Positions 32,423 to 36,104 are shown, counted from the first letter of the stretch. The stretch: DNA of 64,000 bases from Selaginella moellendorffii (GCF_000143415.4 NW_003314298.1:1085250-1149249); one strand, 5' to 3'. Notes: generated from the letters alone by a model not told the origin. Program-made: numbers and translations.

Positions 32423-33828
<1,406 letters not shown>

Positions 33829-34018
33829 GGCGCTGCTTGGATCGCAATCGCAAAGGGATTGTGAGCTCTCATAGTCGAGGAGCCCACGACTCTGTGATTG
33901 GACGCTCTAGATTTGCCCACGAAGCAGAACCCTATATTTCAAAATAGAGTCAAATCGCCATGTAAAAAGTATTTCGAGGTTTAGGGTTCGGATCCTCGAT
34001 CGATCGATCGATCGGGCG

Positions 34019-35484
34019 ATGGCGCTGGACGTAGCACAGGTGGTGCTCACGGCATTCGACACGAGCATGTCGCGGACATGGCGAGAGGAGGATCGGCGCT
34101 GGCGGTCCGAGGACAGAGTGTGGAGGGCCGAGGATCTCGAGTACCGGGCCGAGGAGCGCAAGTGTAGGAATCAAGAGCGGGCTATGCGCGAGGCCGAGCA
34201 GAGGTGAGAAATCCTGGAGCTGTGTCTGGAGAGATTTTTTCATGTTTCTTGATGTGCTTCGATGAAAGAGTGCCGCAGATGGAGGGATGAGGATATGGAG
34301 CAGCGGCATGTGGAGAATGCGCGCTACCTGTGGACGAGGTGAGTGAAATCCTCTCATTCATTTGTATTGTTGTAGTGTGGAGTCTTCCTTTGATCAAGTT
34401 TTCTTTCCTTGCTCTCGGTTTTGATTCTTCTCTTGCCTTATAGGTTCGTGGAGAAAAATCGTAGGGACGTGGAAGAAAAGTCCGAGCAGCTTAAAGCGAT
34501 CTCCAATCTGGCAGCCTTGTTTGCTGGTTTTGCTGTAGTAACTCTAACACAATTCACCATAGCTCCAGATCCAGTTTTAACTGTAAGTTTTTTTCTCTCT
34601 CGCGCTCTAGATATGAAGTTCTTGCTTCCGTGTTTCAACAGGTTTGGATCGCGTTTTATGGTGTATTGACTGCGATCGCTGTGAGTTTTTCATTTCACAT
34701 CACTCGTACTTTTATAGCTTTAACTTTGATGGTCTCGTTTAGGTTGGTCTCATGACGATATCAATGGTGACTTGTACTTTGATCTTGGGGAGCATACTAA
34801 AGAACGGCAAATCATACGTGAACGAAGAGGCCGAAGAGGAGTTCATGTTCAAGTGCCGTGACTTTGTGAAGTCTTACAGGACTGGAGACAAGCCACCGTC
34901 TCCTCGAAGAACTTTCGAAGCGTTTTGGGAGATTAGGTTGGTCTTTCTCTCTTCTTCGTTTCCAGCATTTTTTTTTTTGTTTCGTCATCTGTTTTCTTTT
35001 GCAATTTGCAGGTGTGAAGATGACTGGAAGAGAGCTTTCCAGTTCTTTGCATGGGGTAGGCCTTTAAACTCCAGTTAGTATTTTGTGACGTTTTCTCTTT
35101 TAACAGGGGTGCTGTCCTTCCTTTTCAGTTTGATCCCGATTGGGTGGGTGTATTTACCTTTTTTTCCGTCTGATGCGATCACCCTCCTCGCAGGTGGATA
35201 AAGTTTTATAACTCACGGCTCACAGCGGGACTCTTCATGGGAGTGATTGCAGTATCAATCATAGTCTGGTGAGTAAAAAAGAATGGAAGTGGTACCTGAT
35301 AAAACAATACTGGACTCGTTTCAGGGGCTTTGTACAATACTTATGGGGGGGATATCTCACCAAGACGTTTAGATACAACCGGACGAGCATAGCGGAAAGT
35401 GGGAGCAGCCATGCGGCCAGCATCTCGGCTGGACTGCCATTCGATTGGCATATTGCTCCGGGGAGTGTAGATAGGCAAGTCTGA
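34019..35484 (+). CDS. Orai-like (CRAC channel family) four-TM protein; ~9 exons
   Basis: TM1 QLKAISNLAALFAGFAVVTLTQF aligns without gaps to Orai TM1 [22 protein letters not shown]. Further hydrophobic segments (WIAFYGVLTAIA..., FFAWGVLSFLFSLIPIGWIKF, AGLFMGVIAV...) are joined through short GT-AG introns. Confidence 0.8.
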
Positions 35485-36104
35485 CAAGAGGAAAAGAAAA
35501 GAACAATGACGTAAATCCGCAAAATAGAGTTCCCTGTCCAAGCCTTCCACTCGAGAACGAATCTTGTCATCATCCAGGGAGCTTGAATCTTCTCTTTCGT
35601 GCTTGAAAGCTCACTGGTTTCTATGTTCACTTTGTAGCTGGAAGGAAAAGTCGACTCGTAGAAAGAACGGGCCTTCCCAACAAAACCAACGAATAATTGA
35701 GTGTTACTGCATCCACGAGGTGCCACTTTTTCCCGTGCATTCCTGTGCCTCTTCGCTGATAATTATTGTCCTTTGGCTGCAGGAAGGAAAAAAGAAATGG
35801 AAAGAATATTTGTGAATCAAATTGAAGCCCACTGGTCTGACTTGAGATTTCCCATTCGGAACGTGCAGCCAGCCTTTGCAATCATTTCTGAGCGCCGCAC
35901 TGGAGTAGTCGCAACCGACCACACAAATGGGGCTGAAACAACGTACCCGATTTCCAGGGAGTGATATCCTTAATGCGTGCTGTAGAGAAAAATGATACGA
36001 TCATCTCTGCGTATTATCCGCCATGAGTTTGCTCGATATAAACCGGAGGCGCTGCCTTCTCTTTTGCTCGTCACAAGAGAACATCACACTTCGAGTCCAG
36101 AGCT

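Follow-up and report, generated by a model that had tools for sequence, protein, structure and literature searches.

A glutamine at the selectivity-filter position of a Selaginella moellendorffii Orai gene and of its streptophyte relatives

The window analysed here, on which all positions are counted from the first letter, is a stretch of 64,000 nucleotides of the Selaginella moellendorffii genome (GCF_000143415.4, NW_003314298.1:1085250-1149249). A nine-exon gene occupies 34019-35484 of its + strand (1466 bases including introns), with an intact reading frame of 310 codons and canonical GT..AG introns. Exon boundaries were read by eye from the sequence, and the exons were then searched singly. 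Using exon 3 as the phmmer query against 1.84 billion cluster representatives, we recovered the database protein P0001, which is identical across the exon and corresponds to S. moellendorffii LOC9653726 (310 aa). In-frame translations of eight of the nine exons were found in P0001, in the same order and with zero mismatches, and exon 2 of the model is the direct reading of the sequence and its splice junctions. The features are as follows.

34019-34203, + strand: exon 1, with the ATG at 34019; cytosolic N-terminus with Trp at seven-residue spacing and WRxED repeats; translation equal to P0001 residues 1-61
34279-34338, + strand: exon 2, conserved WRDEDMEQRHVENARYLW segment, with transcript joints on both sides
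34444-34582, + strand: exon 3, pre-TM1 helix FVEKNRRDVEEKSEQLKA and TM1 pore helix, equal to P0001 residues 83-128
34505-34507, + strand: AAT codon of Asn103, at the position of human R91 and fly K163
34550-34552, + strand: CAA codon of Gln118, at the selectivity-filter Glu position (human E106, fly E178)
34642-34680, + strand: exon 4, start of TM2, with transcript joints and a match to P0001
34743-34936, + strand: exon 5, remainder of TM2 and the conserved cytosolic loop 2 (EEAEEEFMF ... PPxPRRTFEAFWE)
35012-35055, + strand: exon 6, end of loop 2 and start of TM3, with transcript joints and a match to P0001
35107-35143, + strand: exon 7, TM3, with Ser228 at the human E190 position
35194-35268, + strand: exon 8, end of TM3 and most of TM4, with transcript joints and a match to P0001
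35325-35484, + strand: exon 9, end of TM4 and the C-terminal tail with the GLPFDWH motif; stop codon TGA at 35482-35484
35485-35900, + strand: 3' UTR, with a 63-nt intron at about 35720-35782; transcript contigs continue past 35900

The segment 34444-34582 is exactly one exon, bounded by AG|G at 34442-34444 and T|GT at 34582-34584. Read on the + strand, 34445-34582 translates into 46 residues, FVEKNRRDVEEKSEQLKAISNLAALFAGFAVVTLTQFTIAPDPVLT, which contain LKAISNLAALFAGFAVVTLTQF.

Between about 0.4 and 0.5 of the sampled words of the gene were present in 20 public runs from eight studies, the amount expected from exons alone. These runs were catalogued as RNA by guess, and it is the spliced contigs that establish their RNA nature. 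For four runs, each from a different study, the contigs were aligned to 33700-35900, and these data report the presence and structure of transcripts rather than their abundance. The contigs begin at 33991-34019 and follow the predicted GT..AG joints 34203|34279, 34338|34444, 34582|34642, 34680|34743, 34936|35012, 35055|35107, 35143|35194 and 35268|35325. Support from all four runs was the rule; the exceptions were 34203|34279, seen in three runs, and the pair 34936|35012 and 35143|35194, each seen in two. The contigs are 2.7 kb long, and the joint of the 3' UTR intron, 35717 to 35781 (cut +2), was present in 4/4 runs. No variant letter was seen in exon 3 among the contigs of the four runs, and the CAA (Gln) codon is therefore present in the mRNA. 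The gene is spliced and expressed.

Other forms of the transcript were also observed. In one run (X1), the exon 2 acceptor lies 10 nt upstream, at 34269, so that 34269-34278 are included and the frame shifts. Intron 7 (35144-35193, 50 nt) is retained in contigs of X1 and of a second run (X2), where a stop would precede TM4. Not all of the mRNA thus encodes the full protein, and these two forms may be alternative or unproductive isoforms.

The product belongs to the Orai family. A search with the Pfam Orai-1 profile (PF07856), which the preliminary description of this DNA had proposed for what it took to be an Orai-like channel, gave P0001 160.3 bits (E 4.8e-47) for a cut-off of 25, the match spanning residues 84-273 and profile positions 2-172 of 173. 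Exon 3 alone scored 46.8 bits (E 3.4e-12), far above chance, and exon 5 alone 36.6 bits. In contrast to the profile, sequence comparison with the PDB was weak, since exon 3 alone had no phmmer match at E up to 10 and the whole of P0001 matched Drosophila Orai at no better than E 0.029, so that a structure comparison was needed for a clear match. The AlphaFold2 monomer model, built on 106 homologues, has a mean pLDDT of 88.6 and helices at residues 2-118, 125-166, 199-236 and 241-271, and its long N-terminal helix passes into TM1 without a break. When the PDB was searched with Foldseek, Drosophila Orai took all of the first ten places, with a probability of 1.00. VIA-align gave Z 14.7 and an rmsd of 2.5 Å over 125/127 residues with 7kr5_A, and Z 14.4 with 4hkr_B, the rmsd of the two matches ranging from 2.5 to 3.7 Å. 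The proposed Orai identity is thereby borne out, and considering the profile match, the fold and the pore register described below, LOC9653726 is a genuine Orai-family four-helix membrane subunit. Two metagenomic or unnamed relatives, P0002 and P0018 (433 and 532 aa), each contain a pair of Orai TM1 segments of the Gln type and look like tandem-duplicated or fused Orai domains.

The register of TM1 is secure, as HMMER and structural alignments agree. In the HMMER alignment with Drosophila Orai (4hkr), residues 94-128 run gap-free, with Q118 opposite the Glu and N103 opposite the Lys. The starting pairs of the structural alignments (84->144, 88->148 and 96->156) share a constant offset of +60, which makes Q118 the equivalent of fly E178 and N103 that of fly K163. 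In human numbering, Leu107 (L95), Gly110 (G98), Phe111 (F99), Val114 (V102) and Lys99 (K87) are kept, while Gln118 (E106; fly E178), Asn103 (R91; fly K163), Ser95 (R83) and Ser228 (E190) are changed. The preliminary description had read a Gln at the E106 position and retained G98, F99 and V102, and both observations hold in this gap-free alignment, which offers no acidic residue at the filter position. It had also singled out an Asn at R91; the residue is there according to both HMMER and structure, but it is not a special trait of this protein, since Asn occupies the position in 76 of 106 green-lineage rows (39/56 of those with Glu at the filter position, hereafter E-type, and 37/50 of those with Gln, Q-type). 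Asn at R91 was accordingly rejected as a peculiarity of LOC9653726.

Compared with animal Orai1 and Drosophila Orai (PDB 4HKR, 6BBF, 7KR5), LOC9653726 shares PF07856, the four-helix fold and the TM1 register, at a sequence identity of about 20%. It also keeps the Leu/Gly/Phe/Val gate, the Lys of K87 and the WxKF end of TM3, and the gate and hinge positions (L107, G110, F111, V114) are almost invariant in its best 150 relatives. Unlike the animal proteins, it has Gln for E106/E178, Asn for R91/K163 and Ser for both R83 and E190. The outer Glu ring of the CRAC channel is absent (Gln118), as are its basic inner pore and acidic helpers: of R83, K87 and R91, only K87 is kept (K99), and the three Asp of loop 1 in human Orai1 (D110, D112, D114) are reduced to one. 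The roles of these pore residues in animal Orai have been described, and human Orai1 loses function with either E106A or E106Q (PMC4835918).

Most of these charge losses are common to green-lineage Orai. An acidic residue at the E190 position was found in 0/106 green-lineage rows, and Arg or Lys at the R83 position likewise in 0/106, with S, A, T or G instead. Reduced pore charge therefore characterises the green subfamily as a whole. In these alignments, position 118 alone separates E-type from Q-type proteins, as no other pore position switched along with it in the 106 rows. The number of acidic residues within 12 positions after the filter differs little between the E and Q types (2.09 vs 1.56).

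The filter column holds 98 Q and 52 E among the best 150 cluster representatives, and 141 Q, 116 E and one N among 259 green-lineage homologues once a further search was added. In a maximum likelihood tree of 77 non-redundant proteins (quick IQ-TREE, LG+C20), all streptophyte Q proteins formed one set with an SH-aLRT of 97, in which 29/29 rows have Q. This set includes algae (Chara braunii, four Closterium strains and Spirogloea), mosses (Sphagnum, Ceratodon and Physcomitrium) and vascular plants (two Diphasiastrum genes, two Selaginella genes and Ginkgo). It comprises two sub-lineages, Q-A, with LOC9653726, and Q-B, with Selaginella LOC9644061, Ginkgo and mosses. The preliminary description had left room for a private change in one copy; given 141 Q among 259 homologues and a streptophyte clade that is Q throughout, the Gln was rejected as a peculiarity of a single gene.

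The TM1 segment SNLAALFAGFAVVTLTQF occurs without a single difference in Selaginella, Closterium and Sphagnum fallax/jensenii, and one conservative change distinguishes this region in Ginkgo (FAIV) and in Sphagnum troendelagicum (KAV for KAI just upstream). Among 36 proteins with the LTQ motif, the mean frequency of the majority residue is 0.95 in the pre-TM1 segment and 0.89 in TM1, compared with 0.72, 0.66 and 0.48 in TM2, TM3 and TM4. TM1 and its cytosolic extension are the best-conserved part by this measure, a pattern that fits a working pore helix and not a decaying one. These comparisons indicate that the Gln is an ancient and selected character of the streptophyte Orai lineage.

Outside streptophytes, chlorophytes hold both types, with AFLQF in Tetradesmus, AFLEF in Bryopsis and Ostreobium, and GFLEF in Chlamydomonas Cre01.g025000. 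The tree implies at least six interchanges of E and Q within the green lineage, at least four of them forced by well-supported branches. The green-algal E-type proteins (Chlamydomonas Cre01.g025000, Bryopsis, Ostreobium, Mesostigma) share with LOC9653726 the WRxED helix, the RFVEKNRRDVEEKSEQLK pre-TM1 segment, the loop 2 motifs, GLPFDWH and the Asn at R91, but they keep the filter Glu (AFLEF or SLVEF) where LOC9653726 and its clade have TLTQF.

Three Orai genes were found in Selaginella: LOC9653726 (Q-A), LOC9644061 (Q-B) and the E-type LOC9650622 (P0220). The last of these belongs to a land-plant E-type clade with an SH-aLRT of 100, comprising Selaginella, Diphasiastrum, Sphagnum and Picea; Ginkgo Gb_35851 and one Spirogloea protein share the TM1 of this clade. 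The land-plant E-type proteins (LOC9650622, Picea D5ADI2, Ginkgo Gb_35851) are of the same family as LOC9653726, with the same cytosolic motifs and about 45% identity, and LOC9650622 lies in the same genome. They retain the Glu, but their TM1, LSWxTGLxTSFTMTxPxEF, has Trp at R91, Ser for Gly98 and Thr for Val102, as in P0220 and its relatives P0217, P0214, P0245, P0265 and P0266. This Trp/Ser/Thr pattern is kept from Spirogloea and Sphagnum to Picea and Ginkgo. In humans, R91W is a SCID mutation (PMC4835918).

The triad of Q-A, Q-B and the E-type with Trp coexists in Sphagnum, Diphasiastrum and Selaginella. Ginkgo has Q-B and E, and Spirogloea has Q-A-like, Q-B-like and E-like proteins. The presence of the triad in land plants and of a similar form in Spirogloea places its origin before land plants. 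For Chara, Closterium, Physcomitrium and Ceratodon, the homologue searches gave Q-type proteins only.

Besides the pore, LOC9653726 carries cytosolic modules typical of the green lineage. Its N-terminal helix of about 80 residues has Trp or a hydrophobic residue at every seventh position (W21, W28, W35, Y42, C49, M56, W63) in WRxED-type repeats, and runs into the almost invariant RFVEKNRRDVEEKSEQLKA. The Trp helix is encoded at 34079-34340 (P0001 residues 21-82), and 19 green-lineage Orai proteins all have W28, W63 and W80. Loop 2 is long, acidic and proline-rich (EEAEEEFMF ... PPxPRRTFEAFWExRCE), and the C-terminal GLPFDWH motif is common to green-lineage Orai. In the scan of P0001, no Pfam family matched the N-terminal helix, loop 2 or GLPFDWH. 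Animal Orai lacks this heptad-Trp helix and has a shorter loop 2, and its C-terminus is a STIM-binding M4 extension where LOC9653726 has the GLPFDWH tail. No STIM is reported from plants and green algae (PMC11085791, PMC8318260), and the green-lineage modules, having no animal Orai counterpart, are obvious candidates for assembly and gating there.

The reading that we consider most likely, with a probability of roughly 0.55 that includes the identity of the protein, is a pore of weak selectivity whose gating falls to the green-lineage cytosolic modules. LOC9653726 would form an Orai-type hexamer, the mouth of which would be a ring of six amide side chains instead of carboxylates. The hydrophobic gate would be intact, and the inner basic rings would be reduced to one, with two of three missing. 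The other acidic determinants of the animal channel would be gone as well, given the Ser at E190 and the one Asp in loop 1. With carboxylates lacking at 106, 110-114 (one Asp in loop 1) and 190, the high-affinity CRAC Ca2+ site would be missing, leaving a pathway, perhaps for cations, of weak selectivity at most. STIM would play no part in gating, which would proceed via the N-terminal Trp helix, loop 2 and the GLPFDWH tail. Because the model is a monomer, the pore geometry is derived by homology.

The main argument for conduction is how extremely well the pore helix is conserved throughout the streptophyte radiation. The main argument against it comes by analogy from human Orai1, where E106Q is dead (PMC4835918), so that a Gln ring would be non-conducting by animal rules. 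The repeated E/Q interchange also counts against the weakly selective pore, as the position could matter less in the green subfamily than this reading supposes. Our literature search found no current, localisation or oligomeric state for any plant Orai.

The loss of function in human E106Q (PMC4835918) is equally what one would expect if the Q-type were a pore-modifying or non-conducting subunit. It would then assemble into heteromeric hexamers with LOC9650622, and perhaps LOC9644061, and set the number of filter carboxylates. The coexistence of Q-A, Q-B and E-type lineages in the same genomes (Selaginella, Diphasiastrum, Sphagnum) is consistent with such partners. However, the E-type partner, with Trp at R91, Ser at G98 and Thr at V102, would itself be blocked by animal rules, and the four genera for which only Q-type proteins were returned offer it no partner in our searches. 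The conservation of TM1 in the Q clade also exceeds the need of a passive partner. We rank this explanation second and consider it rather unlikely.

A third reading, which we hold to be improbable, is that the Q-type lineage abandoned channel function and serves as a membrane adaptor or regulator, the precedent being Jiraiya/TMEM221 (PF15038). To our knowledge, Jiraiya is confined to animals. The analogy is that Jiraiya is an Orai derivative without Ca2+-binding residues (PMC7016017) and that the acidic selectivity determinants of animal Orai are all absent from LOC9653726. Against it, P0001 has no PF15038 match in Pfam at E up to 1 and keeps the Orai pore-helix pattern, with an almost invariant hydrophobic gate and Gly hinge and with TM1 as its best-conserved segment. 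A few metagenomic relatives have a precomputed PF15038 match beside PF07856.

It is hardly credible that the Gln came about as damage to a decaying or unexpressed copy, or that the gene model has created it: the intron 7 retention and alternative exon 2 acceptor in some contigs would suit it, but the private lesion or pseudogene was rejected on the intact 310-codon frame, the GT..AG introns, correct splicing in four studies, the identity of the product with the annotated P0001, the 141 Q homologues and a streptophyte clade that is Q throughout.

A broader proposal is tentative, and we would give it less than even odds. From zygnematophyte algae to gymnosperms, streptophytes may have a three-member Orai system, with two Gln-pore lineages and one Glu-pore lineage with Trp at R91, which would co-assemble. 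Its rules of permeation and gating would be fundamentally unlike those of animal CRAC, with no selection of Ca2+ by a carboxylate ring and with a Trp-heptad helix in the place of STIM. On this view, the "plant Orai Ca2+ channel" of the reviews would be a different kind of channel.

Plant Orai homologues as such are already known. The preliminary description had stated that Orai occurs in some non-flowering plants and that STIM is not known from plants, and the literature agrees (PMC7016017, PMC11085791); the homologues reported there are from Physcomitrella, Selaginella and gymnosperms (PMC7016017 citing Edel 2017; PMC11085791). What appears to be new is a Gln-pore variant conserved from stoneworts to Ginkgo. 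A full-text search, whose scope did not extend to Edel et al. 2017 or Collins and Meyer 2011, found no paper that takes up the Gln of plant Orai. The published supplementary alignment of PMC11085791 includes PpOrai1 of Physcomitrium with the same TLTQF pore helix as LOC9653726, and the main-text passages on Orai of that paper make no remark on the Gln.

Reviews describe the Orai of plants and algae as a channel that is either Ca2+-permeable or activated by Ca2+ release and that persisted as far as gymnosperms, and ask what replaces STIM (PMC8318260, PMC11894410, PMC11085791). This reading rests on homology to animal Orai and on the Chlamydomonas protein, which keeps the Glu. The main Orai clade on the land-plant line has Gln at the residue that makes animal Orai Ca2+-selective, the same change kills human Orai1, and the paralogue that keeps the Glu bears the human immunodeficiency substitution R91W. 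Given the conservation of the Gln from stoneworts to Ginkgo, plant "Orai calcium channels" probably work unlike animal ones. Either plant Orai pores follow different rules, or they are not Ca2+ channels, and either outcome changes how one should view both the disappearance of Orai from flowering plants and the issue of store-operated Ca2+ entry in plants.

Some minor observations concern the surroundings of the gene. A short (CGAT)n run lies at 33999-34017, immediately before the start codon, and a (CT/GA)n run at about 33300-33340. Upstream, 32423-33300 on the - strand holds a neighbour whose ORF translations, judged by eye, are old-yellow-enzyme or 12-oxophytodienoate-reductase-like, and transcript contigs of high coverage end at 33727-33917. 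Downstream, the 2.7 kb Orai transcript contigs extend more than 1.3 kb past 35900 toward an NPF/PTR-type transporter gene that starts at about 36246 on the same strand, an extension that could reflect read-through, overlapping UTRs or an assembly join.
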